Part shown: piece by piece, positions 12,946 to 53,566 of the stretch
Layout: each line of letters opens with the position of its first letter
How positions within the stretch are numbered: position 1 is the stretch's first letter
Sequence record: NC_015251.1
Reading direction: 5' to 3' (one strand)
Length of the DNA: 64,000 nucleotides
Position numbers and translations under genes: made by a program
The notes under the pieces: generated by a model
Told to the model about the DNA's origin: nothing
Databases searched by the model: none
The model's input: the letters and a program-made list of their open reading frames with translations, nothing else

Positions 12946-12989
12946 GTTTCGACAAAGAGAGTATCCCACAAACGGGGATACTGTGTCAA
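12946..12989 (-). promoter_or_regulatory. Early promoter with -10 hairpin and +1 GTCGAAAC
   Basis: TTGACA-18-GATACT-6-GTCGAAAC; AGTATCCC...GGGATACT palindrome. Confidence 0.8.
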
Positions 12990-12995
12990 CAACTT

Positions 12996-13595
12996 TTAGA
13001 AATTTTTATGAATAGCTACGGCTTCCCACACTTTGTTGAATGCTTCCTGATATGCATCATTTTCTGCAAACTCACGGTCGTACTTATCCGGATCCATCCC
13101 ACCACTATTAGTACCGTAGAATACCATACCGTTTTTAAGTGTAATCATACAGAACAAGAATCTATTATGTTTCTCAATTACGTCATTACTACCGTAGATT
13201 GGGACAGATGAATCAATACCCTGAGCGGCGGTAAAATAGTTAACGGTTGAGATATAACTTTCTACTTCGGTTTTATCGATTGATACACTTGTGGGGTTAT
13301 CATCAAAAACCTCAAAGAAATTGTTCAATTCCAACGAATCAATCCACCAAGTATCGCATCGTTCTTTTGAAATACCTTTCGTATTTTCTGAAAAAATAAC
13401 TTGGTTCTTAATTATCAGATCGGAAGAATACCAATTTTTATGTTCGGGGTGTTTCTGGATGATCGTCTTCATTCCACAAAGTTCCCGTTCTTTCATTGCT
13501 TCAACAACGATTTTAACATTTTTTAGAAATTCTTTAGATAAACCACTTGCATAACGAATATACCCCTCGGGGTTTTTCAATTTAATATATTTCAT
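12996..13595 (-). CDS. Fusion of a paralog-family N-terminus with a C-terminal N4 gp49/Sf6 gp66-like (Tad1-like) domain
   Basis: NYFTAAQG...FCMITLKNGMVFYG...DPDKYDREFAENDAYQEAFNKVW. Confidence 0.7.
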   Translation of the reverse strand: MKYIKLKNPEGYIRYASGLSKEFLKNVKIVVEAMKERELCGMKTIIQKHPEHKNWYSSDLIIKNQVIFSENTKGISKERCDTWWIDSLELNNFFEVFDDNPTSVSIDKTEVESYISTVNYFTAAQGIDSSVPIYGSNDVIEKHNRFLFCMITLKNGMVFYGTNSGGMDPDKYDREFAENDAYQEAFNKVWEAVAIHKNF

Positions 13596-13875
13596 TTATT
13601 ATGTCCTAAAATTCGTAAATTTCTTTTTTATAATCGAAATCTTCATCCAAATCTATTAGTTTGCCGACATACCAACGATCTACATTGATATCATCACAAT
13701 CACTCAGGGTTCCAGTTCCCGTATTTTGCTTCTAATTTAAATTCATATGCCGATTGCCATATACAAATAAAACCATTTTGGTCTATTGTAATTTTAAATC
13801 CAGTTTCGTCTGGAAACATTGGTATGATAATTTTAATTCCTTTTAACTCTATCTCTTTGGCGAATTGTACAAATT

Positions 13876-14040
13876 TCATTTGTTATCACCCGCAATCATT
13901 AGAACAATTCCAGCGATTACAGGGCTGAAAATTAAAGATCCCAATAGCCACAAAACCCAGTTGCGCCCCCAGATATGGGACCCCAACGCAACGAGACAAC
14001 TTAAACCCATATACAACGGATCTAGAATTTCAATATTCAT
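13876..14040 (-). CDS. Small membrane protein (54 aa, below the track cut-off)
   Basis: MNIEILDPLYMGLSCLVALGSHIWGRNWVLWLLGSLIFSPVIAGIVLMIAGDNK; ATGA overlaps at both ends. Confidence 0.65.
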   Translation of the reverse strand: MNIEILDPLYMGLSCLVALGSHIWGRNWVLWLLGSLIFSPVIAGIVLMIAGDNK

Positions 14041-15546
14041 ACACGAACCCCAGTCAAAACAACAATTTCATAATCATCCAGAGGGAAATCTACATCTGGA
14101 TCTGAATAGTGTGTGTTTATTCCCCGAACAATTACCCCACGTTCCAGAATATGCTTTATGTCAAGCCAGTTTGGTTCACACCAAACATTATCAGCGAATT
14201 CAGATCTCACCAACGAGTAATCCTGTTCGCCATCAATGTAACTGGTGAAAACTTCCCAACCAATAAATTTTCCGGTGTCTTTATGTGCAAGTGCAAACAT
14301 GGTTATTTCCTCTTACATTACTTCGGGTTGAGTGTGGACCGCACGGTATTTCTGTTGGAAAGACCGAACAGAAACAATCATGGGATTTTCAGAATTTTCA
14401 ATAAAATCTTTGGTCATTAGGGTTCCCAAAGACCCCTGAGACATAACAACACCTTTTCGGTAGTGTTCACCTACACACCAACCCTTGTTATTCAGTACAT
14501 AGTCCATAGCATCTTGAAAAGACATATCAAATTTGTTCATTACCATTTCCTCGGTTTTTTGATTCCAAACGCAATACGATTCTCGATAGCATTGTAATAC
14601 GTTTCTTTAGCTTTGTCTTTATAATAATCCAATCTAAGCCTAAGCTCGTATTGTTCATCTCGATTAAACACGTCTGTGAATAATACATCATCCCCATCGA
14701 ATTGGTCAAGTAAAACTGCACCATCTAAGATTTTAAGCTTTATGGTGTCGGGAATATACTCAAACGTTATAACGAAAAACCAACCCGGAATTTTGATATT
14801 ACGTCTAACGCTACGCGTTGCAGTACCAACATCGAGGGACCCGATAATTTTTTGAGTTAGTGGGCGAATAGCGGGCTTGTGCTTTTTAAAAAACATTTTC
14901 ACTCTCCGTAATTATTAGCGGCCCAAATTTTCCAATCAAAACCACAATTACATTTACCTTGTGAGTCTTGATATTCTGCGTTTTCACCACACACCGGACA
15001 GCATGGGACCGACACTGTGAACTTAGCACCAATGGGCCACGAATCGGTATGGATTACCGCATATTCACTCTCATATGCTTCCTCTTGCCCAGCAGCAGTA
15101 GCCCACACATAAGGTTTGTTATTCTCTACGTTCAGGCGAATTTCACCATGTCCAACTTGTTCATATTTCATTTTTCAATCTCTTCAAAAATTGTTACATC
15201 GTGAGTTGTTTGGATCGTCTTGTTATCCATAATATAATCGGTGATCCCAGATTCCGCTTCTTCACGACTACCAGCACGATATTCCTTGATCATGGTTCGA
15301 GTTTCGCCGGTTTTTGCGTCAGTAAAAACTACTTTAAACAAAAAATCTTTCATGGGTATTCCTTATTTGAGGGGAAACCATACATTCTAGGATATGAGAT
15401 ATCAAAATTACAGGCCATGCATAAAATCCACGGAAGGGGTTTTCTTCGTCTAAGTGTAGTGCGACTGCCCAGATACCAATAACAATGTAAAACACTACAA
15501 ACGCACACACTTCAAAGATTACATGACTCATTTCGATATCTCTTTT

Positions 15547-15589
15547 GTTTCAACAGGGATAGTATCTCATACCCCCGATATTAGATCAA
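15547..15589 (-). promoter_or_regulatory. Early promoter with +1 GTTGAAAC
   Basis: TTGATC-17-GATACT-6-GTTGAAAC. Confidence 0.75.
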
Positions 15590-15800
15590 CCTATTTCATA
15601 GGTCCTTGCCAAGTTTTTATGATGTTGTGCTTGGTAAGACCTAATGTGTATTTCACTTCATTATATGCTTGTTTGATTGCGTAATACGTTTCAATCAAAA
15701 TCGACAAGAAGAGGATTACAAATACAATGATAGGAAATGCTAGTACCAGATAGGTACGCCTAGCAATATTTGAATCCCAACTAGCAGGGTGTTTCATTTT

Positions 15801-16382
15801 TCATTCTCCATATTTTGAGTTATCTATCATATCTGGGTTTGGAACACAACGCAACTTACCCAAAGTTTCTTTCTTACGGCGAGGCAAATACCTTTGTGAA
15901 ATGTCAGGAAGGTTTTTCTCACAAGTACCGACTACTTCATCGCCTAACATAATCAACCATGCACGGCTCATACTCTTATGCTCTACTTTAGCCGTTGGAT
16001 CTGCTCCCATTACTACAGCCGCCGCTTTCCAACAAGTACCGTGGATATCCCTTCGTTCTACCCAGTGAGCGAGTTCATGGTTTATAGTGTCTGCTATCCC
16101 TTCCCAAGTCATAAACCTCATATGATGTTCAGAAAGATATATCTTACGATCTGGACAAGCACACATACCAACGTATGACTTGTGATTTGTAAATTCCAAT
16201 TTGTAAGGAAATGCGACATTCCATTTGTTTATTTTGTGGGTGCGATAATAATCTTGTGCAAATTTAACACGGTCTTTGTAGTAAGAACTAATCTTGTCTT
16301 TCAGAACTTGAGAAATCATGTCACCATCCATAAAAATAAACCCTATACCGATAATGGTACAGGGTTTGGGATCTACAGTCAA
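15801..16382 (-). CDS. SprT-like zinc metalloprotease
   Basis: GMC...IYLS, TINHELAH (HExxH), HGTCWKAAAVVMGA; the true start is probably MISQ near 16320. Confidence 0.85.
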   Translation of the reverse strand: MTVDPKPCTIIGIGFIFMDGDMISQVLKDKISSYYKDRVKFAQDYYRTHKINKWNVAFPYKLEFTNHKSYVGMCACPDRKIYLSEHHMRFMTWEGIADTINHELAHWVERRDIHGTCWKAAAVVMGADPTAKVEHKSMSRAWLIMLGDEVVGTCEKNLPDISQRYLPRRKKETLGKLRCVPNPDMIDNSKYGE

Positions 16383-17623
16383 TCAATTTTTGGATATTTT
16401 GAACTATTTTATCTACCCATTCGCACTGATACACCCGCTCCGTGGTTACATCATACTTATCTGGGATCACATCGCGACCGTATGTGATCCAAAGGAAAAC
16501 CCACCCAAAATATAGAGGTACATGCCACCACTTCAAATAGTTTCGGTTTTTCATATGCATAATATATAAAACAAACAACGGTAGAATTAATGCTATGAAA
16601 ACAATACCGAATGACCACCACATACGAACTTCTAGAATCGGATCCATCATTGTTTAGCTTCCTGTTCCGTGATGATAGTCAATTCACGATCATGATAATT
16701 ATAATTGTATCCATTAACACCGTAAATTTCCATGGTAGTCCCCGGTCGTGCGCAACCTTCGCCATGACCCCCACCGAAGGTAGTTAGCTGTCGGGAGATT
16801 TTGAATTTTTCTCCATCTGAATTTTTCACATAAAATACGTCAGGAAGTTTTACATCACCCAGACCTTGGGGATACACAACCGTAACATAATTACTCGAAT
16901 ATCCACCGCCGCTATTGTAGCGAACAATCATACCTGATAGGTCTTTCTTTAGTGCCATCAACGCAATGGAAAGAACCTTTGCTAATTGAAATTTATCTTC
17001 TGTGATAGAAATCACATCGCATATACGCGATTTCAGTTCTTGGTGATCCATAATATAATTCTCTTATTTAAATGTCAATTTTACGAATGTACTCATAAAT
17101 TTTTGAAGGAATAGTAGCTATCTGGATGAAAACATTATCCTGATACCAGCTATGGAATGTAGGATTATATCCAAGCTCTCTTAGTTTTTCTAAGTGTACC
17201 TTAGATCCAGTAATGAGTCCACCCCTTTGTGCGAATTCTGCAAAGTGATACATCTCTTCATCATAGATAAAAATACCCACGTTGTAGCAACCTGAAGTTC
17301 CGTTAAATTCTTGCCAGAAGTTCCAACTATCATCTTTAAATTCAGACAACATATCGTGTAGATAATCTAGTTTCAGAACTTTTATTTTATCGAGTTCGTT
17401 TTTCATAAATCAATCCCCTACTACAAATTGGATTTTAAGATTCGAATATAATTCTCCTTCCAAATCAACAACACACCACCCATCTTGAGAATCCCAGTAT
17501 TGGATTACTCCATTCTCATCAACACACCATTTCTCAGATTCCAAGTCATAATCATCATATTGCAACACAGCAATAAAATTACCTTTAGTAGGCATAACAT
17601 TAGTCAGTTTCATTACATATTCC

Positions 17624-18964: not shown

Positions 18965-18997
18965 AAAAAGCCTATATCCGCTAAGATACAGGCTTTT
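18965..18997 (-). terminator. Rho-independent terminator
   Basis: AAAAGCCTGTATCTTAGCGGATATAGGCTTTTT hairpin. Confidence 0.8.
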
Positions 18998-19007
18998 GGT
19001 TTCTATG

Positions 19008-19322
19008 TCAACTACATTTATTCAATTCTAGAACTTTAAGTTGAGAATATCGGTTTTCTAGTTTCTCTCGGGCATTTGTCTCGGCAATTACATTACCAAG
19101 ACCAAAGTCTCCAAGGAAAGAAAAAACGCTACGAGCATCAAACTCAGATGTTTTGTTTATCTCCGAACGAATACTATCAGCACGAATTAGTTCAAGTTTA
19201 ATCTGTTCACATGTATATTGTTGTTCTTCTGATGTACTAACATTTGGGGTTTGTGGGTATTGTTTTGTTGCACACCCAACCATCATAAGAGTGGCAAAAA
19301 CTGCAATAATAATTTTCTTCAT
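19008..19322 (-). CDS. Lipoprotein
   Basis: MKKIIIAVFATLMMVG-C signal peptide and lipobox. Confidence 0.8.
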   Translation of the reverse strand: MKKIIIAVFATLMMVGCATKQYPQTPNVSTSEEQQYTCEQIKLELIRADSIRSEINKTSEFDARSVFSFLGDFGLGNVIAETNAREKLENRYSQLKVLELNKCS

Positions 19323-22080: not shown

Positions 22081-23372
22081 TTTCTAATGCCCATTTTGGG
22101 GGAATAGGATTCATCCTAATCACTGAATTTTTAGGTATAGTTTGTTTAAACTTAACTATATTTCGGTTTATATTTACTTTTGGTCGCAACTTAGAAGCCG
22201 AACACATCAGCATAGTCCCAAATTGATAAATTTGCAGTCTTTTACTTCCTGCTCGGTCATTTCGAACTCGTAATATCCATTAATCTTATGGCGAGTCATA
22301 CGAGTCATCATTTCAGCAACCCGAGATAGAACACCAGTAATAAGTTCTAGATGTTCAACATCCAATTCATTCATTTTAATTTTCATTATATATACCCCAA
22401 AACAATTTCCGGATCCATTTTTGACAATAGATTTTCAGTTCCAAAATGGTCAATAACATCTTGGATTGTAAAGTGATCCAGTATATTGTCGTCTCCGAAA
22501 TATCGGACAATTTCACGAATTCCCAATTCGTCTAGAATCGGTTCCGGATCCATTCCCTCTACGGTAATATATACATTCGAATTATTACAATATCTGCCAG
22601 TAATTTCTATAACGCTGGCTACAGTTTCAACATTAACAGTCTGCATTATGCAAATCTCCGCAGTGTTTTAAATTCGTCTTCTGGGATTTCGATATGTTAA
22701 TGACTCCATACAACATAGCATTTACAATATTTTCAAAGAAATCCGTATCTTCTGGGGTTTGTTCACCGCTGTTGATACGGCTCTCCAACCAAGATGCAGA
22801 AACCCATTCTTTAAGCTCTTTAATATTAACTTGATATTTCATGTTTATTCCTTATACGATTTAATAAAATTCAAAATCTCTTGACAAATTTCGTGCTGAA
22901 ATTCTGCATTTGGATAATATCCATCAAATTCACACAAATCGAAATTAGTTTCTTTCCATGGCAATTCAAAAGCCCAACTAATCATACCTTTTTGAATACC
23001 GCACGATACATAGAAATGATATTTTCCATCATAACACCGAACTTCTCTCAGATAATTCATAAATTCTTCTGGGGTTACTTCATACCATTCTGTTACTATT
23101 TTCTCTCTCGGGAATCGAATCATGATTTGACCTCTTGATATTCGGTATCGTAGTATTCATTCAGAACAGTAACAAATTTCAAATCTTTATGTTTATTTTT
23201 CAACTCTCGATACATCTGACCGATAATGTCAGATTTACCCATACGGTTAGGTGCCCCAAGAATTCCAAGATAATCAACAACTTCCCCCAGCGGAAGTCCA
23301 TCAACAGATGGCGCTGGAAATCGATACATATTACAAACATCCATATCTACAAAAGGTTTCATAATAAATTCC

Positions 23373-26304: not shown

Positions 26305-27038
26305 ATCTGTTTTTCTTTCTTACATCTAGATTTCATTAGATAGTCCCACCTTGAGTAAGATATAGAATCTCTTCGGTATTCAACTTACTGCGAATAGATT
26401 CTATTTTTCTCTTTTTGTAAGAATATCATTCCCAATCATTTTCATTAGATACCTATCCGGATTTGGTCGGATACATTGAATGATAGTTTTCCAAGATCCC
26501 GCATGAATACCGGTTATGGTTTTCAATTGATTTTGTGAAGGGATATATGTAAATCCACTATAATCTTTAGCGAGTTGACATGCAAGTGTTGGGTTGTCGG
26601 AATACATAATAGTATCCGAGTGCCCGTGCCCTGCTCGATATATTTGATGTACGTTGGTACGAATTTCTATAGTGGCACCATTATGTTTCTTCATAATTTT
26701 ATTCCTCATCATCAAAAATTGGTTCTACAATAACAGATTTACCGTATTCAGTACACCCATCATGAGTGCTATATACCATACTAATGAGATTGCGGTTTAT
26801 CCATTCGGTTTTTTGTTCCGTGGTACAAATTCCCCAAGACTCCATTAAACCTCCCGGATAGCAGTTTTGGAAGTGATAAACCTCAACAGGTTTCTTATAC
26901 TTGTTTTCCATATAGGAAATTGCGATATCTACCGCAGAACGGTCATGACGGTTTGAAAAAATCCAGTTTTCTACATCACCTGAAGTAGGGTTAAGGGCAA
27001 CTACCAATGTTACAGTATTTTCCATGGGATTCTCCTTT

Positions 27039-27093
27039 GTTTCAATACAGACAAGATACAGGAAAGCCCTAACCGTGTCAACAGCTAGGGCTT
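27039..27093 (-). promoter_or_regulatory. td terminator overlapping an early promoter with +1 ATTGAAAC
   Basis: AAGCCCTA...TAGGGCTT hairpin contains TTGACA; then 17 bp-TATCTT-6-ATTGAAAC. Confidence 0.75.
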
Positions 27094-27097
27094 AAAA

Positions 27098-28867: not shown

Positions 28868-30222
28868 TAAAATTATTCCTGAATACGTACATTCATAACA
28901 AGAGAAATGGATTGTGCAAATAGCTTATCATCTGGGTTTTTATGTAGTATTTTGATTCCACACAAACAAACAGATTCCCAAGCTAAACACGTATGATGTT
29001 TTCCATCAACCCCAATACATGGGAGATAACATTCTTCGTTTTCTTCCATTTTATACATCCAAAAAATAGAAATATTTTTGTTCTACTAATGGAATAGAAA
29101 TTTTTTGAATACCATCTCGGGTAATTGAATATACTATGTCAGTAACCCAACTAAAATCATTCAAACTATGGGTTACTGTAATAACATCCTTTTGATGGAG
29201 AATATCAATCAATTCGAGTTGAATATCATTTGTTCCGAAAATAGTTTTATATTCTTCGAACCTATGTTCTTTAAATTTAATTTTCATAGTTTTTCCAATT
29301 ATGGGGTAAGTTCTTCATTTACAAAATCACGATGGAACAGATACACCAACGGATAATGAGTAACATAGTTGTCACATTTGAATCCGAAATAAATATTATC
29401 ACGGCTTACAGTTTCATCTACAATTTCCATTGAATATTTTTTACCATCTTCAATGTAAACCAAAGACCAATATTTCCCGTCTTCGTTATAATGGGTGTTC
29501 CATTGGAAATCAGAATAATTCCGATCATATTTTACATTAGTCAATACCCGTTCACTGTCGGCATATACATAGTTTAGTTTCATTTATTCCACCTCGACTA
29601 ATGCTTGTTCTACCATCTCAAAATATTGTGTTTGATTATATGGTCCTTCTAATTGAAGGATTGAATTATACGGTTCCCCATTATCATTCAGACTAATATC
29701 GTATGAATGTACACCGATCCAACTAACGTTGCTAATTTCTATTACATCACCAACATCAACAATATGGCGGCTAGATACCGGTTTAACAATCTTATAACGC
29801 TTTCCTGCTTCAATCATAATTATATTCCTCATAAGATTTGCGAATACGAACAGAGATTTTTGCTTTGACCCCGTAAGGCCCGCCATGATGTTCCCTCCAC
29901 CAGTCTCGGGCTTCTTTCATTGCATCAGAACGGTTACACCACCGTTCTAGATGTACTTCAAACGACTCACCTTTTGTAATTGCAGCATATCCATAAGTAG
30001 ACATTTCCGGTGTAAACTTTGCAACCCACTTATGATTCTTGTTCGATGGTTTTGTCTTTTTCTTTATACCCAAAGCGGATTCTACTTTAGACAGATTACC
30101 ACGTACCATCTCACCATTTATGATTGCATAAAAGTTGCCATCATTCAGTGTTCCTATTCTTTCATCTAACATCAAGTAAGAACCATCGTTCATTTGAGTT
30201 TTGATAAGCATGATAATCTCCT

Positions 30223-30265
30223 GTTTCGATATCAGTAATGTACATCAATCCAAGGTCTAGATCAA
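30223..30265 (-). promoter_or_regulatory. Early promoter with +1 ATCGAAAC
   Basis: TTGATC-17-TACATT-6-ATCGAAAC-AGGAG. Confidence 0.75.
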
Positions 30266-30497: not shown

Positions 30498-30725
30498 TTA
30501 TTCCCCTACAATTTCAAACAAGTACATTTCGTAAGTGGAAATGTAAAAAAATGTTCCTGATATCACAATCCAATATCCATTGTGGTCTGGGTATTCTGGT
30601 TTTTGGTGGACAGAAAATTCACCAAGCCCAACCAAACCCGCGAGCATGAGATTGTGGGGGTCTGTGTACGGAGTCGATTCAACAAACCGGTTCATTGCCT
30701 CTTCTGACTTGAATTTGATAATCAT
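30498..30725 (-). CDS. Hypothetical protein, KFKSEE paralog family
   Basis: MIIKFKSEEAMNRF...EMYLFEIVGE. Confidence 0.7.
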   Translation of the reverse strand: MIIKFKSEEAMNRFVESTPYTDPHNLMLAGLVGLGEFSVHQKPEYPDHNGYWIVISGTFFYISTYEMYLFEIVGE

Positions 30726-30737: not shown

Positions 30738-30780
30738 GTTTCGATATGAGTAATATACCTCAAGTTATTACCCAGATCAA
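30738..30780 (-). promoter_or_regulatory. Early promoter with -10 palindrome and +1 ATCGAAAC
   Basis: TTGATC-17-TATATT-6-ATCGAAAC-AGGAG; GTAATA...TATTAC inverted repeat. Confidence 0.75.
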
Positions 30781-31757: not shown

Positions 31758-31794
31758 AAAATCACCTTTTGTCTAAGTCAGGCAGTATAGTAGC

Positions 31795-31820
31795 AAAAAG
31801 GGCTGACCGAAGTCAACCCT
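31795..31820 (-). terminator. Terminator (TTCG loop) overlapping a TTGACT -35 for uvsE
   Basis: AGGGTTGAC-TTCG-GTCAGCCCT-TTTT, then TACTAT. Confidence 0.8.
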
Positions 31821-32166
31821 TTATTTTTATTCAATACCAGATATGTCACGAAGGTCACTAAAAGACCCACCATCAAGAAGACAGTTTACAATCTTTTTCA
31901 TAGTCGCCTTTGCTTTTGAGTTAATTGGAATGTACCCAACCAAATCATAGTAACCGGAACCATCGAATTCAAGAATCTCAATTTGATTATTATCTTCTTG
32001 AACACAAGTAGTCAAATAATATAAATTGTGTGTTTCGTGATCAACACTTGAGTCTAATAGTTCAACAAAAAGACCGTTACAATTTTCGTCATCACCCCAA
32101 CACACGGTAGTTTCAAACAGGTTTTCGAATTGTTTACTTTGTTCTTTATTCATTTTAGCCATTTTA

Positions 32167-32463
32167 TTATTCCATTACAATTTCAAAGAAAATCATATCA
32201 TTTTCGTGGACAATAAAAGGACAATCATCCAATCCCGAGTGTTCGGTCAATTCTACTCGATCTTTTCTGATATAATAACTACCGGTTTCAAAGTCAAATC
32301 CTACAGAAAAATCTACATCAAATTCATTTAGACCTACAACTTTCACAAATTGTTTTGCATTACTTTGTATAAACTCAATAAACGGACCACCGATATGACT
32401 AAATTTGTTTTTGATTTTCAAATACATATCGATATGTTCTTGGTCTTTAAATTTCATCTTCAT
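32167..32463 (-). CDS. Hypothetical protein, KFKxxE paralog family
   Basis: MKMKFKDQEH...NDMIFFEIVME. Confidence 0.7.
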   Translation of the reverse strand: MKMKFKDQEHIDMYLKIKNKFSHIGGPFIEFIQSNAKQFVKVVGLNEFDVDFSVGFDFETGSYYIRKDRVELTEHSGLDDCPFIVHENDMIFFEIVME

Positions 32464-37139: not shown

Positions 37140-39072
37140 CCACCCTTTCTAGATCTACCTCTACATCAGCAGATATAAGGCTTTCGAAGTGTCCAGTTAT
37201 AAACCATGTACAAATTTGAATTCGACCACCTTTATGATGGATCATAATCCCATCATAAAAATCCCACAATTCCCCTTTATGCTGACTAATCGCCCACGGT
37301 TGTTTACGTGCCAGCTCAAGGACTTTATTCTGTTTGCTGGGAGTCCATCGTTCGTTATTAAACGCCATATAATATTCATTAAAGGCATGAAGCTCTAACA
37401 GGGCTTTGTATGCATCATCTTGGTTATCCCAAATGGGTGATAGTGTAGTTTCGGTTTCTTCAGACCCAAAGCTATCCCCAGTTACATAACGAACCTTGAT
37501 AGTGTAGTTCATATATTATTCCTTATGAAAGATGAATGCAACTTTTTTAAGAACACCGTCAGAAACAACAGAACCCACTTCAAAACTGGTAGATTTTGTA
37601 ATCAATTCAATTGCATGACCCATTTGACCGATATGATCCAACAGTTTCCCATTTGGCTTATTTTCTTTGCGGGTGAACACAATGACCCATCGATTTGAAA
37701 CCAGTGAACCAGAATCACCATATTCTTTAATTTCGTAATTAATATGGTCCATCATACCTTTAAGGTTAGTTGGTTCAAAGAATTCAACAACCGAGGCTCG
37801 GCGTTGAAGTTCACTCATAAATTTATTGAAGCCATATGCAAACTCGATATTCTTCCTGCATATCGATCTTGGAGTTTTGATCTTACCACCATAAACATCA
37901 ATTTCATTAAGAAATACTTTACGAACATAAGTTATTAGTTTCATTTTTGTTCTCACATCAGATTGAATTTGTTACGAAAAATGTCATGTGCTTGTTTCGC
38001 GTTTTCCAGATCTCGCCTTGCTTGATCTACCGCAGCAGATTTTTCAGATACAACATCCCACAACCGAGATTTTTCTTCTTTAACCAATTTGGCGATTTTA
38101 TCAAAATCCACATAATCAGCAACATCGAAGGTTTCCGGTTTTGGAATACAAGTTTCCGAATTCTCCAATACATCCAAACTAATTCGGATCTTTAGTTCGG
38201 CAGACTTTTTCCTACTACCGACGTAAGTATAAGGACGGTTTCGGCGGTCTTTAGGGAAATCAGTATCATATCTGATATATTCCACAACAACCCCAGAATG
38301 AACATCTTCTACTTTCCGGAACAGTTGTTCCAAATGAGTTACCATACCAACACGAAAATCTTTGTTGTTGTGTATTGTGATATATACAAATTCATTTTTT
38401 GACTCAACCGAGTAATTAATGTTTTCTTTAAGATTACCCATACTGGTATGTGGTCCTTTCATTCGCATAACACGGTTAAGGAATGCAGGATCCATAATTT
38501 TGTTTGTGATAAATACGGATTGATTTGATTTTGGGATTGGTTGACGGTATTTTTTATTACCAGCATAATCAATTTTATTAGACAAATATTGTTCAATATA
38601 TTCTACAAATTCATGTTTCATTGGTTAATCCTTTTTATAAGTTACAGGAGTACATTCTAACTTTTCCATTTCCAAAAGGAAAGGAGTCTCTTCTTTCTTT
38701 TTCTTTTCACAGAGTTCGAGTGTAGTAGCGATTTCCACTTGGAACGGTTCGCATACAACTTCATCTTTATCGTTAAACAAGCACGAAGTAAGTACAAGAG
38801 CGAATAAAGTTTCCATAACATCTCCTTGATTTGATATAAGTATTATCCCAGATTTACATACCAACGTCAACAACAAATTTTTGTTTACAGTGACGACATT
38901 TCATATCACATAGACGATGGATCCACACAACCAATTGAACTTGGTTTGTACCGCATTCGGGACAATGAATCTTCATACTACTTATGGCTTTTCTCCTATC
39001 AACCATTTCAGATATGGCTTTATTCATAACATCTTCATCGACTATCATATCAAACATAAAAAATTCTCCAAA

Positions 39073-39120
39073 TAAAAAAGCGGTATAAGGGATTTTACTC
39101 CTTATACCGCACATTGTCAA
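39073..39120 (-). promoter_or_regulatory. Terminator hairpin enclosing a promoter -10
   Basis: TTGACA-17-TAAAAT; 11-bp stem GCGGTATAAGG/CCTTATACCGC followed by TTTTTT. Confidence 0.8.
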
Positions 39121-39353
39121 CTAACTATCTTTNTGTAACTCGCTAATAAACCAAATCAGATAGATTTCTTCTCAAACGACCGTATTCACCACAATACATT
39201 CCTTTTGTTGTTTTTCGCATCCGCATATAACACTCTTTAGGCGAGCCATTTATTGTAGATGGAATTGGATAAACCAGCTCACCGGAATAATAAAGCCATG
39301 TACCGAAGTCTTTTGAAGATCCCATAGATCATAGCATAAAAGACCGAGTACGG

Positions 39354-40735: not shown

Positions 40736-41327
40736 ATTTATTTCCTTTCAACTTTAACAAAACTGGAACTGGAAGGGTCATTCCAAAAATATCCACCACT
40801 CGGTTTGATATAAGATCCCCGCTTAGAGTTCTTATTCTTGACATATTGCATATGAATTGCATTAAAGTATCTCAGATTTGTAGAAATCTTTTTCGCGGCT
40901 TTTACCATATTGTAATTAAAATAGAAACACCCAATAGAATCAAATGTTACACACATACCACCAGTTTCATCACGACAATAAGAATACTTAAGATATGGGT
41001 TCTTAACAATACCCATATGTTCAGAATCTGAAATAATCGTGCTAATAAACCCACACATTAGCTTTAAAGAGAAAAATCGAACTCGACCAAAACCATCAAT
41101 TAGGGTAAATCCCCGCGCCCCAGTATCTGTACCGTTTGCGGGACGAAATCCCAAAGCTTTAGCAGTTTCAACCAACACCGTAACATTTCTAATCATATAA
41201 TTATCCTTTCCGACATTTGACGTTTTTCATTTTGAACTCAGACATGATCACATCATAAAGACGGGCCTTTTTACCATACTTAGCAATCAGCATTTCTAAT
41301 GACATTTTCATGGTAGTTCCTTAGTTC

Positions 41328-41371
41328 GTTTCGACAAAGAGAGTATCCCACGAATAGGATACTCTCGTCAA
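41328..41371 (-). promoter_or_regulatory. Early promoter/terminator module with +1 GTCGAAAC
   Basis: TTGACG-18-GATACT-6-GTCGAAAC; perfect 10-bp stem GAGAGTATCC/GGATACTCTC. Confidence 0.8.
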
Positions 41372-45387: not shown

Positions 45388-45615
45388 TTAGAGAACCAGA
45401 GTTTTGGATTTCTTGGTGATTACGGTAGTGGTTACAGAACCACCACGGCGACCGGTGCGGGAAAGAGTGAGTGTTTCTTTCTTAGTAGGCTGTACCTCAA
45501 CAGTCCGAGCCCAACGCTTTTCGGAAGTAGTACCGTTATCAGTCATTTTGCCAAAAGACGCAGCACGGGCATTTGAACGAGTAGAGAAGAAAACTTGTAC
45601 GTTAGTCATGGTCAT
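45388..45615 (-). CDS. Small basic conserved phage protein
   Basis: FSTRSNAR...FGK..DNG...KRW; has its own promoter and SD. Confidence 0.7.
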   Translation of the reverse strand: MTMTNVQVFFSTRSNARAASFGKMTDNGTTSEKRWARTVEVQPTKKETLTLSRTGRRGGSVTTTVITKKSKTLVL

Positions 45616-45637
45616 TTCCTTTTTAAAATGGGGTTTC

Positions 45638-45680
45638 GTTTCAACAAAGCTAGTATCTCACACTAGGTTATTCGAGTCAA
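45638..45680 (-). promoter_or_regulatory. Early promoter with +1 GTTGAAAC
   Basis: TTGACT-17-GATACT-6-GTTGAAAC. Confidence 0.8.
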
Positions 45681-47031: not shown

Positions 47032-47622
47032 TTATTTCAAAGAAGCAATCAGTTCTTCAACTTCGGAGTCAGTAACTTCAGTTTGTTGGTGTCCGTTGAA
47101 AGTTTCGATTCGCATCATTACATCTTCAACGTTTACCTTAGTCAAGGCAGCCAGTTCAACAACATCAGCAGCACAAGAGATACCCAAATCGTTAGCGGCT
47201 TTAGTTTCGCGGATATATTCCAGCTTAACAGCGAGATCTTGACGTTGGTCATCCAGAGAAACAACCGCTTTCGCAATTTCAATTCGCATATTATGAAGAC
47301 CATCAGCCTTTTCGATCAGAGCGGCAGCAGTACGGCGGAACAAAATAGCCAGCTTCGCGTGAGTAACTACAGGACCGGAACCTTCCTTGTTAATTCGGCG
47401 GATTTCGTTTTCTTTCTGGATAGCCTGTTTGGTCTTTTCTTCCGCAAGCTTCCGCAAGCGAGATTCTTCACCTACAGACTTTTCCTTTGCGGTCTTGAGA
47501 CGGGTCATCTCATCAATCACATTACTTGCAGCCAACATATAACGATCTTCAACAGAAATATTTTTGGTGAAGAAGGAGTTCATTTTGGTGCGGATAAATT
47601 GTACAAGTTCTTTAAGTTTCAT
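47032..47622 (-). CDS. T4 e.6-like coiled-coil protein (PspA/IM30-like)
   Basis: FIRTK...SVEDRY...HAKLAILFRRTA...RIEIAK.VV.LDD.RQ.LAVKLEYIRET, matching recalled T4-like homologs. Confidence 0.7.
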   Translation of the reverse strand: MKLKELVQFIRTKMNSFFTKNISVEDRYMLAASNVIDEMTRLKTAKEKSVGEESRLRKLAEEKTKQAIQKENEIRRINKEGSGPVVTHAKLAILFRRTAAALIEKADGLHNMRIEIAKAVVSLDDQRQDLAVKLEYIRETKAANDLGISCAADVVELAALTKVNVEDVMMRIETFNGHQQTEVTDSEVEELIASLK

Positions 47623-47651
47623 TATTCATTTTCCTTTTGGATTTGTGTTTT

Positions 47652-47694
47652 GTTTCAACAGGATTAGTATCTCAAAACTAGTTCTTGTCGTCAA
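47652..47694 (-). promoter_or_regulatory. Early promoter with +1 GTTGAAAC
   Basis: TTGACG-17-GATACT-6-GTTGAAAC. Confidence 0.8.
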
Positions 47695-48009: not shown

Positions 48010-48013
48010 GTAA

Positions 48014-48256
48014 TTACTTGGCTTTGGACCGGAGAGCTTTTGCTACATCCTGACCAGATACAACCCGACCGGCGATGAATTGAGCATCTTTGTCCTTGGT
48101 AGTTTTCAGGACGTTCATTGCACGATTAACCTTTGCTTTCAGTGCATCACCAAGCTGGTCAACCCGACCGTTGGATTTGCGCTTATAACCGGTGCGACCG
48201 GATTTAGCAACTTCGACTTTCTTTTCTACTGCTTTCTTTTGCTTAGACATTTTCAT
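48014..48256 (-). CDS. T4 gp30.9-like basic protein
   Basis: KSGRTGYKR..N.RVD; lies directly downstream of gp31 as in T4. Confidence 0.6.
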   Translation of the reverse strand: MKMSKQKKAVEKKVEVAKSGRTGYKRKSNGRVDQLGDALKAKVNRAMNVLKTTKDKDAQFIAGRVVSGQDVAKALRSKAK

Positions 48257-48272
48257 ATTTCCTTATTTAAAA

Positions 48273-48647: not shown

Positions 48648-48917
48648 TTTACTTATTCTCTTCGTTGTTTTGTCTATTATATCATGGTTTTAGGAAATGT
48701 GTAAAGCTTGCATAATACATATCCATCATTTTTATCAGGTCAGTATCTAACCCATTTTGATTATAGGCATAACTTCCGGTTTCAGCCATATTTTTCATTC
48801 TTCGGTCACAAATCACACAATCCATTTGATGCATGGTTTTTCGATCTACCACCTCAAAAAGAAATGTATCATAAAATTCTTCAAATGTCATTTCTTTTTT
48901 AGAATCGTCTATGACTT

Positions 48918-49271
48918 TCATTTTTCACCAACACTTAGCATATGTGTTTCAACACCATGGAAAATATCACCATGGCATAGATCCGCAAGTGTAACCAATT
49001 TCTCAAGTTTAAAGGTACGGAATTCACCCTTATCTACATCAAAGAATCGGACAACATCCGGGTTTTCTTTACGTGGTTTTGAATCGGGTTTAGCCTCTTC
49101 AGGGCGACCAATGACAGATTCGACAAGAACCGGATCCAGAGTTGCTTTACCAGATCTCTGTGTTCCATCAACTTTCTCAAAAGTCAAATCAACAACCCCA
49201 GATTTAAGGATCTCAATTACGCTGGATTTGAATACTTCACGACCTTCTACGGTCAGATCATTATAATTCAT
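48918..49271 (-). CDS. SH3/WYL-like beta-barrel protein conserved next to gene 31 in T4-like phages
   Basis: GVVDLTFEKVDGTQRSGKATLD...FFDVDKGEFRTFK. Confidence 0.7.
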   Translation of the reverse strand: MNYNDLTVEGREVFKSSVIEILKSGVVDLTFEKVDGTQRSGKATLDPVLVESVIGRPEEAKPDSKPRKENPDVVRFFDVDKGEFRTFKLEKLVTLADLCHGDIFHGVETHMLSVGEK

Positions 49272-49284
49272 ACTATGTTATCTC

Positions 49285-49824
49285 TCACAATACTGTTAAA
49301 AATTTAGGAAGACGAGGAACCCGAACATGATAATTATTGAAGTCAATCACAGACTCATATTGTTCAACCTCAATACCCTGATCCTCTAAGGTCTTTTCCC
49401 AACCTTCGGCGGATTTACTATAAAGAGTATGATATATAACCTTTTTGATCCCAGCAGCAGCCATATGTTTGGCACAATTAGAACACGGACTCAAAGATGT
49501 TACCAATGTAGCACCATCAACCGATTGACCGGAACGGGCAGCATATAGCAGAGCATTCATTTCACTATGGATTACATGAGTGTTAGCCCATGAGCTATAT
49601 TCATCTTCATACTTTGGATACAATCTAACACCATCTACGGCTCTTTCAGCCCAACCCATATTGATAGCGTGTTCATCCGGATTAATCCCCCCCGCACGGG
49701 TCCCATTATACCCTGTAGAAATCACCCGACCATTTTTAACAATTACGGTTCCTACCTTATGACTCGGGCATTTACTTTCGTTACTAACAGCAAGCGCCAT
49801 TGTAACTAGTGTTTTAATCTTCAT
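49285..49824 (-). CDS. cd: dCMP deaminase
   Basis: VGTVI, STGYNG, HSEMNAL and SPCSNC. Confidence 0.95.
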   Translation of the reverse strand: MKIKTLVTMALAVSNESKCPSHKVGTVIVKNGRVISTGYNGTRAGGINPDEHAINMGWAERAVDGVRLYPKYEDEYSSWANTHVIHSEMNALLYAARSGQSVDGATLVTSLSPCSNCAKHMAAAGIKKVIYHTLYSKSAEGWEKTLEDQGIEVEQYESVIDFNNYHVRVPRLPKFLTVL

Positions 49825-50377
49825 TTAGTTTATCGCCTTTTCTTTCCCATTTTTATATTGTTGACCAACACAATAGCAAACCTCACCAAATTTATCTATA
49901 TATACCGTATGGATCAGAACTGGCATACCAACCGGATCCACCACAGCAATTTCATAAATTGTATCAGATTTCTTAATATGACCAACACGGAACGGGTTAG
50001 GAACCGTTTCATCAAATCGGTTTACAAGTTCCATTACTTTCTGTTCAAATTCCAATACGTCCATTACACAACACCTGAATATTTTATATTAGATACTTTT
50101 CGCACCGTGATGGTACTTAGGATCTGATTTAGTTCTTTAATCTCTTGTTGAGTCAACTTCTCATAAATGTCTGGGCGGAACCAACGAGATTTAACCAATA
50201 TCCCCCGCTTAATACGATCACGAACGTATGGAACAAATACGGTAGACTCATACGTTTTTGCATATTCGAGTTTATTAAAAAACAAACCTTTTCCGTGATG
50301 GAATATGACGTGAGTTTTTCCACCCACATCAGAATAAGTTATTGCATACATTTCATACCTCTTTTGTTTCAATCATA

Positions 50378-51178
50378 TCATACTTCCTTTTTCTTTGTAT
50401 ACCTTTTTGTAAGGATTTTCAGGGTGATATGAGAAACCATCGGAGTAAGCATAAATCCGAACAAGAACCAAACCCAAGTCCTACGACCAAGCTGTTTAGC
50501 TTTAACGCTTACATAGATAACCCACATTAAAATCAAACTAGTAATTATCATACCAATCCAATCAATAGACGAGGATGATGGCGGTTCTGGATCTGTAATT
50601 ACTGTACTCGATTCCTTATTGCAACTATCTGGGATTTTATATATCCGTTGCATAGTGTCAATAAGACCGGATGTATTTAATGTTACGTCTCGAATATCAC
50701 CGGCAGTTGTTAAATAATTTATGTGAATACTATCGGAATTAACCAAATTGTAATATTCACCGGTACACGTATTTAGCTCCTGATATGAAAATAGTTTCAT
50801 AGTTACCGTAGAATCAGAAACTCGTATTGATTCCGCAATCCCATTAATATTTCGGTTTTGTGGCTCGAAATATTTAACGGTTTCACCCACTTGAACCACA
50901 ATAGGGGTCTTTGGATGAAAGTTATCAATCAAGGATGACATATTCATATAGAATGCCTGATGACGTTGCATGGCAGCAATATGAAGAATATACGGGATCG
51001 ATTGATCTTCTGATTCTGGGTGCGGAAAATATCCAACCAAACTCATAGTTTTCTGAGTAGCAGCATCAGTTATAATATGCTCTCTCCAAACACGATCTGA
51101 ATCTGGAACCATGGCAGAGACTGATAATGATACTAAAACAAATAAAGAAACTATAAATTTTTTCATAAATCTCTCCAC
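50378..51178 (-). CDS. Exported protein with a C-terminal membrane hairpin
   Basis: Signal peptide MKKFIVSLFVLVSLSVSA; C-terminal TM plus GRRTWVWFLFGFMLTP. Confidence 0.75.
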   Translation of the reverse strand: MERFMKKFIVSLFVLVSLSVSAMVPDSDRVWREHIITDAATQKTMSLVGYFPHPESEDQSIPYILHIAAMQRHQAFYMNMSSLIDNFHPKTPIVVQVGETVKYFEPQNRNINGIAESIRVSDSTVTMKLFSYQELNTCTGEYYNLVNSDSIHINYLTTAGDIRDVTLNTSGLIDTMQRIYKIPDSCNKESSTVITDPEPPSSSSIDWIGMIITSLILMWVIYVSVKAKQLGRRTWVWFLFGFMLTPMVSHITLKILTKRYTKKKEV

Positions 51179-51386
51179 AACCGATCATTAATCTCATTTT
51201 CTAGCCGGATCTCAAGCTCCCTAATTCTAGCTCTAAGATCCTGAATTGTAGATTCTGGGTCTTCCATGTCCATCATGTGGCGGATATTACCCGCACAATG
51301 TACTTGAATAACTCCTTTCTTAATAGCCCACGCAATTTCTTCTTTAGTAAGAAGAGACATATTATCTTGAAGATGATCGTATTGCA

Positions 51387-51764
51387 TCACAGATTTCCTA
51401 CAGTAAATCGAATCTCTTGAACGATTTCGGTTAAGTTCTTAACTTCCATACTAAGCTCTTTTACTGCTTGAAGCAAGACCTCATTTGTATCCGTTTTTGA
51501 AACTACATCACAATCTTCATATGGCATTACGAACATATTCATATGAGTTTCATCATTAAAAGCGTAAACTTCGTCCATAAGGAACTCATTACGTAATTCA
51601 AGTGACGGTTTCAATAAAGTATAATCTTGACCATCCCATATCATCTCGAAAGGTTCGCATGGATCCATAAACCAAGAGCATCGATATTGCCAATTACATT
51701 TTTTGCGATAGTCATCAAACGCTTCTACGGATTTAAAAACAAACAGTTTTGTATTCATATACAT
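51387..51764 (-). CDS. Hypothetical protein, FKSxE paralog module plus coiled coil
   Basis: KLFVFKSVEAF...; C-terminal heptads. Confidence 0.6.
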   Translation of the reverse strand: MYMNTKLFVFKSVEAFDDYRKKCNWQYRCSWFMDPCEPFEMIWDGQDYTLLKPSLELRNEFLMDEVYAFNDETHMNMFVMPYEDCDVVSKTDTNEVLLQAVKELSMEVKNLTEIVQEIRFTVGNL

Positions 51765-51781
51765 TCCTTAAAAGGGGATTT

Positions 51782-52693
51782 CTAAAAATCCCCGCTTTGA
51801 ACCTGCCAGCACTCGATACCAAGACCGCGCCACATTTTGACAACCTGATCGCGATCATCCACAACAAAACACACATTATAATTTGGTGCGATATCACGCC
51901 AGAAGATTTCTTCTTTGATGATAGAAACGGGACGCTGGGCCCCTTCATCGCGTTTGGAATGTGCATCGTTAGGAATGCCATGGGTCTTGTACCAATCGGC
52001 TGTATCACTCATACAGACACCATCACGACCGGATACGTTGATGATCTGATATCCTTGAGATTTGAGAAGGTTAGCCAACATAACAACATTCTCTCGGGGA
52101 GTATCTTCACCAACTTTATCCCAATCGAACGGTTTACGCTCGTTCTTTTCGGCAAGAGTACCGTCAGTATCAAAGATAACTGCCATTGGAAGACTAGGAT
52201 CCGCAGTATAAAGCTTTTTATCTACGTATTCCACCACACGATCCGACTTACCACGATTCGGAAATTGCTCATCGAATTGGGATACCATACGAACAAGAAC
52301 ATCGTCATTCACAGCCCAACCGCCACGGTCCTTACTACGGCGTTTCAGTTCTTCCATGGGGACAGGGAACCAGACAAAGACAACCTCATAACCCATTTGT
52401 TCCAAACTATCTACCAGAGCGGTACGAAGGTGTACGTTAAGGTTAGTATCGGAGATAACAACGTTTTTCTCTGCATTGTAGGCAGCAAGAATTTTACTCT
52501 TGTTAACCTCAGTAACGAGATTTTCGCGGTCTTTACCGAAATTATAACCTTTCCAACTCTTGATCTGGAACAGGCTACGGCGTGTATCATCGCGATTGAT
52601 ATTGATAGTCTTGCCTTGAGAGGTCTTAACCATAGCCTCGGCAAAGGTACTTTTACCGCTGGAACTTGCACCGATAGTAATGTATGCAAACAT
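51782..52693 (-). CDS. pseT: Polynucleotide 5'-kinase/3'-phosphatase
   Basis: GASSSGKST, NRDD, SDTNL, FDTDGT, SGR and DDRDQV. Confidence 0.96.
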   Translation of the reverse strand: MFAYITIGASSSGKSTFAEAMVKTSQGKTININRDDTRRSLFQIKSWKGYNFGKDRENLVTEVNKSKILAAYNAEKNVVISDTNLNVHLRTALVDSLEQMGYEVVFVWFPVPMEELKRRSKDRGGWAVNDDVLVRMVSQFDEQFPNRGKSDRVVEYVDKKLYTADPSLPMAVIFDTDGTLAEKNERKPFDWDKVGEDTPRENVVMLANLLKSQGYQIINVSGRDGVCMSDTADWYKTHGIPNDAHSKRDEGAQRPVSIIKEEIFWRDIAPNYNVCFVVDDRDQVVKMWRGLGIECWQVQSGDF

Positions 52694-52704
52694 AATTATA
52701 TTCC

Positions 52705-53052
52705 TTATTTGTCCATATCACACATATTAGCGTTTACTTTTTGAGCCCATTTACTGGACTTCATATCGAGCTGATATTGTAATTCTTCTTGTACATATTT
52801 GTCAATCTCTTCGTCAGTCAATTTACCGTAAGATTGATCTTTTACGGTAAGACGAAGCAGGTCAACAATACAGTTAATGTAATCGGCACATTCACCAAAC
52901 ACAGTTTCTTTACAACGATACGGTTGAATAATAGTGGTGGCGATTTCACCGTTTTCTTCTGCCATCTTACCCATAACGAAAAGGGTATTCCGTTCGGGAG
53001 AAAACGGGGCGGTTCTTGAAATATACAATTGACGACTAAGATCGAGTTTCAT
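52705..53052 (-). CDS. MazG-like nucleotide pyrophosphohydrolase
   Basis: KMAEENGEIA...GECADYI..IVD. Confidence 0.75.
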   Translation of the reverse strand: MKLDLSRQLYISRTAPFSPERNTLFVMGKMAEENGEIATTIIQPYRCKETVFGECADYINCIVDLLRLTVKDQSYGKLTDEEIDKYVQEELQYQLDMKSSKWAQKVNANMCDMDK

Positions 53053-53523
53053 TTATTTTCCTTTATGCTTTAATATTCGAATTTTTGAATTAGATGTATA
53101 CAATTCGTTAGGTTTAAGAATAATACCTTCCCGCAGATTTGGGTTGTGCTTAATAAGATATCGGATCCGTTCGTTAATTGCAAGCAATTCCCAGTAACGA
53201 AGATTCCTGTTCTGTGCGACAAAATCTTTAAGCATTTGGTTCGCACCGAGTATATCATTCCTATACTCATCTGCTACACTTTTACAGAAGTTTTCAGTTT
53301 CTTCGTTCTTGATAATGTTCATCACTTCACCTCAACTTGATACAAGTGGATTTCACCCTCAAAGATAACCTTACACTTAGTAGTGTTCCAGATACCGTCT
53401 TGATACTTATCCGCAATTGTAAAGTCATACCCTTCTGGGGTATAGATAACTGCGCGGGGCTTCAGGTCTGCGATAGTAGCTTGACGGAACTGAGTGGTTT
53501 TCTTTTTCATGTTTATCTCTCCT

Positions 53524-53566
53524 GTTTCGATAGGGATATAGTCTCATATCCCTACATCTAGGTCAA
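53524..53566 (-). promoter_or_regulatory. Early promoter with -10 hairpin and +1 ATCGAAAC
   Basis: TTGACC-17-GACTAT-6-ATCGAAAC; 9-bp stem TAGGGATAT/ATATCCCTA. Confidence 0.8.

Follow-up and report, generated by a model that had tools for sequence, protein, structure and literature searches.

A conserved start region in the early promoters of Aeromonas phage 65 and its relation to T4-type early promoters

Introduction

The last 64 kb of the genome of Aeromonas phage 65 (GU459069 / NC_015251, 235,229 bp), corresponding to record positions 171230-235229 and referred to as the window in the following, contain nine promoters in which the -10 hexamer is followed, after exactly 6 nucleotides (nt), by an octamer of the type RTYGAAAC. 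This raises the question of why the same eight bases recur at the predicted transcription start of promoters dispersed over an entire gene region. The initial annotation of this stretch had taken the octamer for a conserved initially transcribed sequence and, more speculatively, had likened units of hairpin and octamer to CRISPR repeats. From the analysis described below we consider it rather probable that very strong T4-type early promoters have in the octamer their initially transcribed region, on the first bases of which selection would act through an effect on initiation.

Phage 65, whose host is Aeromonas salmonicida, belongs to the T4-like myoviruses (Straboviridae, Ishigurovirus). An 8-kb portion of the window, when compared with the phage 65 record, showed 100% identity. 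The window is an early-gene region read wholly from the minus strand. Its about 165 annotated genes, all of them encoded by that strand, are mostly small and of unknown function, and they include homologues of the T4 early-region genes rIIB, alc, pseT, cd, 31, e.6, frd, td, denA and rnlA. The G+C content of the window amounts to 36-40% and its GC skew is uniformly negative. Unless marked “record”, positions given for phage 65 refer to the window and are converted by adding 171,229 to the window position.

Results

Architecture of the octamer promoters

RTYGAAAC is present 28 times in the window compared to 15.2 ± 3.4 expected occurrences, and 26 of these 28 copies reside on the minus strand. 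Promoter context is found for nine of the 26 minus-strand copies and is missing from the remaining 17. At all nine sites (Table 1) the elements follow each other in the order TTGAY, spacer, -10 hexamer, exactly 6 nt, RTYGAAAC. At 12946 and 41328 the spacer is 18 nt long, while the other seven sites have one of 17 nt. GATACT serves as the -10 hexamer five times, while GACTAT, TATATT, TACATT and TATCTT are used once each; all of them have an A at position 2 and a T at position 6, and at six of the nine sites a TG dinucleotide is placed one base ahead of the hexamer. Each of the nine promoters is intergenic (gaps of 51-80 nt) and situated 19-37 nt upstream of an annotated start codon, the intervening leader containing a Shine-Dalgarno sequence followed by ATG. 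With +1 of phage 65 promoters predicted as the 7th base after the -10 hexamer, the octamer occupies positions +1 to +8. The arrangement originally described for nine minus-strand promoters, including spacer lengths of 17 or 18 nt and the 6-nt gap, is thus recovered at every one of them.

Occurrence of the octamer within phage 65

Candidate promoters were collected from the whole phage 65 genome by the pattern TTGAY, 16-18 nt, nAnnnT, with the further demand that a Shine-Dalgarno sequence, start codon and open frame follow within 40 nt. This yielded a list of 57 sites including some false positives. Since twelve of the 57 carry the exact octamer, always at a gap of 6 nt and never at any other gap (binomial P about 9e-32), its placement is clearly beyond chance. 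The twelve copies are the nine of the window together with those at record positions 141273, 154851 and 161960; all of them lie at record 136-235 kb, ahead of genes of 36-196 codons. The shorter motif RTYRA is found at gap 6 in 20 candidates and at any other gap in at most two.

The octamer had initially been described as invariant, a description which does not hold for the promoter family as a whole. Within the window only nine of 23 candidate promoters contain it in exact form, the others being degenerate at this position or devoid of it. Near versions in further phage 65 promoters read, for example, GTTGAAAG, GTCGATTG, GTAGACAG, ATCAATTA, ATCGACCA and ATCAAATC, and GTTAACTA is found in the window as well. 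Counted over the 57 candidates, T is present at -1 in 35; G in 24 and A in 14 at +1; T in 34 at +2; T in 22, A in 18 and C in 14 at +3; G in 27 at +4; and A in 30, 29 and 28 at +5, +6 and +7, respectively. Given these soft column counts and the many near or absent versions, the octamer has to be regarded as the sharpest form of a soft preference rather than as an invariant tag.

Further columns are shared upstream: A is found at five positions ahead of the -35 element in 29-33 of the 57 candidates, and G at -14 in 32 of them. A generic scan for -35 and -10 hexamers returned 81 sites in one region (shuffle mean 79) and 95 in the other (shuffle mean 70). As plain hexamer matches exceed those in shuffled sequence not at all in one region and only modestly in the other, the promoter family is defined by its extra shared features and not by the two hexamers alone, and such a scan cannot by itself certify individual sites. 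Late promoters were considered as a contrast class; only seven TATAAATA sites, however, are located ahead of genes in phage 65, which is too few to be used.

The promoters at record positions 161510 and 161960 are identical in -35 element, spacer, -10 element and discriminator and differ in their start regions (ATACCAAC and ATCGAAAC, respectively), hence forming a natural pair. A further promoter-like site with GTCGATAC at gap 6 lies inside gene ST65p435 (60915-60957) with no Shine-Dalgarno sequence or start codon nearby and may be either an internal promoter or a chance match. We also considered whether the octamer provides the -35 element of a second, downstream promoter. The TTGAAA present in some octamers is -35-like, and one was flagged as such; this idea was nevertheless rejected as no consistent -10 element follows.

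Conservation and duplication

The close relative avDM6 is about 86% identical to phage 65 over the 8 kb tested and provides 15 orthologous promoters. Between the two phages, mismatches amount to 0 of 90 positions in the -35 element, 30 of 256 in the spacer, 5 of 90 in the -10 element, 13 of 90 in the discriminator, 5 of 120 in +1 to +8 and 17 of 255 in +9 to +25. The difference between +1 to +8 on the one hand and spacer plus discriminator on the other is significant (Fisher p = 0.009). At seven octamer sites, a single one of 56 positions is changed, and this C/T exchange remains within the motif. The exchange is located at promoter 27039, the avDM6 ortholog of which reads ATCGAAAC and differs in four of the six discriminator bases. 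Within the phage 65 genome, the octamer is combined with six different -10 hexamers and with many different spacers and discriminators. Judged from these comparisons, positions +1 to +8 of the phage 65 early promoters appear to be under measurable purifying selection rather than to owe their uniformity to recent copying.

Copying nevertheless has to be considered, since the octamer might have no function of its own and merely be carried along as promoter-leader cassettes are copied and homogenised by repeat recombination, as proposed for the PeSL (promoter-early stem-loop) cassettes of T4-like phages. Promoter sub-families of phage 65 do share spacer, hairpin and discriminator sequences, and one promoter-leader-gene unit is duplicated: ST65p394 and ST65p184 are paralogs (67% identity) with near-identical promoter, octamer and a leader of 34-36 nt, located about 75 kb apart at 45388-45680 (promoter 45638) and at record 141018-141310 (promoter copy at 141273). 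This pair also qualifies the initial statement that the downstream genes are unrelated, which is otherwise correct for the genes behind the twelve exact copies. Moreover, avDM6 lacks a 414-bp module (29851-30264) in which core promoter 30223 and its leader are combined with ST65p357 (133 codons). The junction coincides exactly with the 5' edge of the -35 hexamer, and avDM6 retains the A-rich upstream tract without the promoter core. Shuffling of this kind is documented for PeSL cassettes (Arbiol et al. 2010, PMC2839356; Comeau et al. 2014, PMC4122927). Against copying as the sole cause, spacer and discriminator vary freely within and between sub-families while +1 to +8 stays the same, the octamer changes less than its flanks in the comparison with avDM6, and the same start region accompanies the six different -10 hexamers and recurs in different genera. 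In addition, only about four of 13 indel breakpoints between phage 65 and avDM6 are near a promoter, which is close to the chance expectation. On balance, we hold an octamer without function of its own to be unlikely.

Occurrence in other phages and in cellular genomes

For searches outside phage 65 we used the exact composite pattern TTGAY, 15-16 nt, TGnGATACT, 6 nt, RTYGAAAC. In IMG/VR, this pattern gives 22 matches in 21 loci compared to fewer than one expected according to our own rough estimate. When the gap is set to 5 nt or 7 nt, no match is found in IMG/VR; a gap of 9 nt yields five loci, four of which represent one conserved coding sequence. The matches at gap 6 derive from phage 65 itself, a close metagenomic relative, the Aeromonas phages AS-zj and CC2, and some eight independent contigs from metagenomes (33-59% G+C). 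One of the matching contigs is a T4-like cyanophage, and another shows only short and weak similarities, mostly to cyanophages. Other promoters of AS-zj and CC2 contain ATTGAAAC or ATCAAAAC at the octamer position. In 596 Gb of bacterial and archaeal genomes, by contrast, the pattern occurs nine times in scattered taxa, with about four matches expected (again a rough estimate of our own), and none of the nine is from Aeromonas or any other gamma-proteobacterium. Matches in viruses together with the few, scattered ones in cellular genomes characterise the composite as a phage feature and neither as a host promoter type nor as part of an array. Hence, the same feature does follow early promoters of related phages, which is what the initial annotation, speaking of most related phages, had named as the mark of a known generic initially transcribed sequence.

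Three of the metagenomic contigs have one conserved promoter in common, with ATCGAAAC at gap 6 (L009 853-895, L015 and L019). Contig L009 (110 kb) is related to T4-like Synechococcus phages; its promoter is placed directly ahead of a helicase gene, and no Shine-Dalgarno-like leader is visible.

Start regions of T4 and T7 promoters

T4-type early promoters have been treated before (Hinton 2010, PMC2988021; Nolan et al. 2006, PMC1524935), and phage 65 was excluded from the published comparison of promoters of T4-like phages. The records of T4 (NC_000866) and T7 (NC_001604) were examined here. Consensus-type early promoters in 69 kb of T4 amount to 18 sites, the starts of which include ATCAACTAC (twice), ATCAACTAT, GTCAACTAA, ATCAAAACT and ATCGGCAAT. 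The corresponding column counts are T in 14 of 18 at -1, A in 11 at +1, T in 11 at +2, C in 9 at +3 and A in 10 at +5. Taking +1 as the 7th base after the -10 hexamer leads to T4 position 133295 for the cd.2/cd.3 promoter, which is named Pe133295 in the T4 record. In T7 promoter A1 the annotated start (position 498) is preceded by TTGACT, 17 nt, GATACT and a gap of 7 nt and reads ATCGAGAG, so that the start rule applied to phage 65 is in the same range as this annotated start. T7 promoter A3 starts with ATGAAACG.

As the starts of T4 promoters are conserved in a form of their own, a conserved start region is a family trait of T4-type early promoters, of which each lineage possesses its own version. 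RTYGAAAC is the version of the phage 65 lineage, of a start region likewise present in T4 and in T7 A1. Our literature search for a published description of this trait in T4-type early promoters gave only the general remark that these promoters, which are likened to T7 PA1, carry “additional regions of consensus” (Hinton 2010, PMC2988021). The T4 early promoters at T4 record positions 167050, 163637 and 146839 are near-identical from the stretch preceding the -10 element through +9, showing that T4, too, harbours repeated promoter sub-families.

Hairpins embedded in the promoters

Perfect stems of at least 6 bp within -32 to +6 are present in 28% of the 57 candidates, the corresponding shares being 6% for shuffles and 11% for windows taken at random from the genome. 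Several of the promoter stems reach 8-11 bp. When folding of the nine octamer sites is compared to that of shuffled sequence, five are significant (z -2.7 to -4.6) and four are not (z -0.5 to -1.2). Relative to the first base of the octamer, the position of the stem's 3' end ranges from -7 to +6. In a first sub-family the -10 element lies inside the 3' arm, the arms being of the GGGATACTC type and the loops 4-8 nt long; in a second one it lies in the loop between arms of the GTGGGT/ACCCAC type. Other hairpins are plain terminators wrapped round the -10 or -35 element and followed by a T-run (39120, 19011, 16382, 27081, 31816). Here, terminator and next promoter occupy the same 40-50 nt (39078-39120, 18969-19011, 16340-16382, 27053-27095 and 31780-31830). 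Three of the embedded hairpins, that of 12946 included, were scored terminator-like by an independent scan. Around the -10 region of T7 promoter A3 (around 715-760), a short inverted repeat GGTAC/GTACC is reminiscent of the promoter-embedded repeats of phage 65.

The variation of both loop length and arm sequence favours a folded single strand over the site of a dimeric protein. This bears on the idea that the octamer region is an operator, at which a phage or host DNA-binding protein recognising +1 to +8 or the inverted repeat at the -10 element shuts off the early promoters. The octamer does overlap the start site, where repressors often bind, and several promoters contain inverted repeats with arms of the GGGATACTC type. 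The octamer is, however, not palindromic, the arms of different sub-families are not the same in sequence and are spaced by anything between 4 and 8 nt even in a single sub-family, and we identified no candidate regulator. T7 A1 starts similarly and is not known to have a regulator of this kind. An operator thus seems very improbable to us.

Two further RNA structures were considered and dismissed. A 5' hairpin in the primary transcript does not agree with the octamer being predicted mostly unpaired (mean pairing probability 0.03-0.54, typically about 0.2). Pairing of the -35 element with the octamer in read-through RNA is seen in some minimum-energy folds; by eye, however, the C/T variant of the -35 element does not track G or A at +1.

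The hairpins had also given rise to the proposal that units of hairpin and octamer imitate CRISPR repeats and act as RNA anti-CRISPRs or as decoys for Cas6, Cas5 or Cas7. The 9-bp stem at 53524 indeed ends right at the octamer, as had been stated, and one octamer of the nine (27039) equals a handle string known from CRISPR RNA (crRNA) papers. Yet no CRISPR repeat family of Rfam matches anywhere in the window, neither at the gathering score nor at E values up to 5. A significant hairpin accompanies only the five sites mentioned above, the variable stem end leaves no fixed cleavage-like distance, and the 5' arm of the hairpin is missing from the predicted primary transcript, which starts at the octamer. 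Moreover, T4 and T7 promoters share this start region, and in the literature searched the papers containing the handle strings quoted in the initial annotation deal exclusively with the archaea Pyrococcus, Thermoproteus, Thermococcus, Sulfolobus and Methanococcus and with Clostridium thermocellum, and neither with gamma-proteobacteria nor with relatives of Aeromonas. Judged from the Rfam families, the hairpin geometry and this literature, we give the mimicry of CRISPR repeats next to no credence. At gathering scores, Rfam yields no hit of any kind, and the only match at a permissive threshold is to the Potato virus X cis-element (58543-58610, plus strand; 23.6 bits, E 0.85, gathering score 42). 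It lies on the non-coding strand and is almost certainly due to chance.

Table 1. Predicted promoters of the phage 65 early family in the window, with the start region at predicted +1 to +8 and folding z scores relative to shuffled sequence.
Feature	Position	Strand	Start region	-35, spacer, -10, gap	Gene driven	Hairpin
Octamer promoter	12946..12989	-	GTCGAAAC	TTGACA, 18 nt, GATACT, 6 nt	ST65p309 (12668-12931)	8 bp, spans spacer and -10; flagged terminator-like; z -2.7
Octamer promoter	15547..15589	-	GTTGAAAC	TTGATC, 17 nt, GATACT, 6 nt	ST65p318 (15334-15531)	weak; z -1.2
Octamer promoter	27039..27081	-	ATTGAAAC	TTGACA, 17 nt, TATCTT, 6 nt	ST65p349 (26699-27025)	terminator-type, encloses -35; z -3.4
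Octamer promoter	30223..30265	-	ATCGAAAC	TTGATC, 17 nt, TACATT, 6 nt	ST65p357 (29810-30211)	none significant; z -0.5
Octamer promoter	30738..30780	-	ATCGAAAC	TTGATC, 17 nt, TATATT, 6 nt	ST65p359, goF-like (30498-30725)	z -3.1
Octamer promoter	41328..41371	-	GTCGAAAC	TTGACG, 18 nt, GATACT, 6 nt	ST65p385 (41201-41311)	10 bp, -10 within 3' arm; z -4.6
Octamer promoter	45638..45680	-	GTTGAAAC	TTGACT, 17 nt, GATACT, 6 nt	ST65p394 (45388-45609)	z -0.5
Octamer promoter	47652..47694	-	GTTGAAAC	TTGACG, 17 nt, GATACT, 6 nt	ST65p397, e.6 homolog (47032-47622)	z -0.5
Octamer promoter	53524..53566	-	ATCGAAAC	TTGACC, 17 nt, GACTAT, 6 nt	ST65p412 (53322-53510)	9 bp, stem ends at +1; z -3.2
Same family, near version	1748..1790	-	ATCAATTA	-10 GATACT		9 bp, -10 in loop
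Same family, near version	38828..38870	-	ATCAAATC	-10 GATAAT		
Same family, near version	57425..57467	-	ATCGACCA	-10 GAGAAT		7 bp, ends at +1
Same family, near version	59267..59309	-	GTTAACTA	-10 TATTCT		
Same family, no octamer	39078..39120	-				11-bp terminator hairpin round -10, then T-run; z -4.4
Same family, no octamer	18969..19011	-				terminator hairpin round -10, then T-run; z -4.1
Same family, no octamer	16340..16382	-				terminator hairpin round -10, then T-run; z -3.9

Further features of the region

The deposited sequence contains three ambiguous bases (N) in the window, at 39133, 42414 and 43946, the first of which is located just upstream of promoter 39120. Phage 65 has three separate small genes with the annotation of a goF-like modulator of mRNA metabolism (30498-30725 and 32167-32463 in the window and, on stretch L006 outside it, 22242-22490), and the first of them is driven by octamer promoter 30738. 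The early region also contains a gene for a DksA/TraR-like zinc-finger protein (53877-54134). DksA/TraR-like proteins bind RNA polymerase, and the encoded protein could bear on the behaviour of the phage 65 early promoters.

Discussion

We propose that the nine sites are early promoters of a very strong host sigma-70 type, composed of an A-rich upstream tract, the -35 element, an often TGn-extended -10 element, a pyrimidine-rich discriminator of 6 nt and an initially transcribed region of which the octamer is the most conserved form. Transcription would start at the purine which opens the octamer, just after the pyrimidine at -1, and the first five to eight transcribed bases may be under selection for start-site choice, for binding of the first nucleotides and for escape from a tightly bound promoter. 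In many copies, this assembly is fused to a stem-loop which overlaps spacer, -10 element and discriminator and which would terminate or attenuate transcripts arriving from upstream. With such an activity of the stem-loop, terminator, promoter and leader would together make up a compact PeSL-like cassette in front of small early genes that are unrelated to each other. The reading as a conserved initially transcribed sequence, put forward in the initial annotation, fits the 6-nt registration, the apparent purifying selection relative to avDM6 and the recurrence of this feature in other T4-like phages, in T4 itself and in T7 A1.

Several points weigh against this interpretation. Over all 57 candidates, the information content at +1 to +5 amounts to only 0.1-0.35 bit per position. 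Part of the similarity among the copies stems from duplication, as exemplified by the paralogous promoter-gene pair. Studies on initially transcribed sequences and promoter escape (T5 N25 system, PMC12464699; Heyduk and Heyduk 2018, PMC5961368) report no favourable motif that resembles the octamer; rather, T at +2/+3 and an early pyrimidine-G step are tied to slower escape in vitro at some promoters. That the octamer aids escape is therefore not self-evident, and the direction of its effect is one that we infer. Finally, the strict anchoring to +1 is equally expected for an element which acts at the 5' end of the RNA.

The latter point leads to the alternative that the octamer acts as RNA, namely as a single-stranded 5' tag that slows 5'-end-dependent decay, is bound by a phage or host factor, or helps ribosomes to load on the leaders, which are short and A-rich. 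An RNA element anchored at the 5' end would be expected to keep just as strictly to its distance from the -10 element; the octamer would form the very 5' end of the transcript, where it is predicted mostly unpaired, and phage 65 encodes several proteins of RNA metabolism (three goF-like, pseT, rnlA, regA). However, Shine-Dalgarno sequence and start codon follow the octamer at variable distances, within the 19-37 nt given above, which is not compatible with a translation element of fixed geometry, and no candidate for a protein partner was identified. Furthermore, similar start regions occur in T7 A1 and in T4 despite different hosts and sets of factors, which favours the shared RNA polymerase over a phage-specific reader. 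An RNA tag therefore appears improbable to us, and we prefer an effect of the start region on initiation.

In a wider sense, the start region (a purine, T, a pyrimidine, G or A, then A-rich sequence) at 6-7 nt after the -10 element may be a distinct, selected promoter element common to early promoters of T4-like phages of several hosts and to T7 A1 and absent from cellular promoters, which is read by host RNA polymerase during initial transcription or marks the 5' end of early phage mRNA for a particular fate. We offer this generalisation as a tentative and rather doubtful one. If true, the start region would be an overlooked part of the way in which lytic phages out-compete host promoters.

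Irrespective of this, the analysis supplies a clean list of the early promoters in an unannotated portion of this T4-like phage of Aeromonas and extends the conservation in these promoters into the first eight transcribed bases, in exact registration and with what seems to be measurable purifying selection. Natural promoter pairs whose members are distinguished by nothing but the start region, such as the pair at record positions 161510 and 161960, constitute natural material on the relation between start region and promoter output. In addition, a tempting story of CRISPR mimicry has been removed as unsupported.

Comparison with known systems

CRISPR repeats and phage RNA anti-CRISPRs share with some of the phage 65 sites a short hairpin followed by about 8 nt, and one octamer is identical to a known handle string. 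The phage 65 units differ from them in that they match no curated family, have no fixed geometry and have no hairpin in the predicted transcript, and in that handles of this type are reported from distant organisms.

T7 promoter A1 resembles the phage 65 promoters in its TTGACT -35 element, its 17-nt spacer and its GATACT -10 element, and ATCGAGAG matches ATCGAAAC in six of eight letters. It differs in having a gap of 7 nt instead of 6 nt, belongs to an unrelated phage family with a different host, and is a single promoter, whereas those of phage 65 constitute a dispersed family.

PeSL cassettes are composite units of terminator and early promoter which are shuffled in hyperplastic regions of T4-like phages (PMC2839356, PMC4122927). 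Likewise, phage 65 has, in hyperplastic regions ahead of unrelated small genes, a repeated assembly in which an early promoter, in part of the copies with a stem-loop, leads to a Shine-Dalgarno sequence and a start codon, and one of its promoter-plus-gene modules (29851-30264) represents an indel relative to avDM6. In the published PST PeSLs, however, the stem-loop is located just upstream of the promoter (published Fig. 3 legend), whereas in phage 65 it overlaps spacer, -10 element and discriminator, or the -35 element, and only part of the copies possess one. Indel breakpoints of phage 65 are not clearly above chance at promoters, and a conserved start region is not described in the two PeSL papers.

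With T4 early promoters, those of phage 65 have in common the use of host sigma-70, an A-rich upstream tract, the -35 element, a G/T-rich stretch that includes TG ahead of the -10 element, a pyrimidine-rich discriminator, a start at a purine and a conserved start region, as well as the location before small early genes on the early strand. The differences concern the sequences of individual elements, namely a TTGAC type -35 element in phage 65 compared to the TTTAC type in T4, a -10 element which in phage 65 often starts with G (GATACT), and a start region RTYGAAAC in phage 65 compared to the ATCAAC type in T4. Rather than being a new kind of system, the phage 65 sites hence belong with T4-type early promoters and PeSL-like cassettes.

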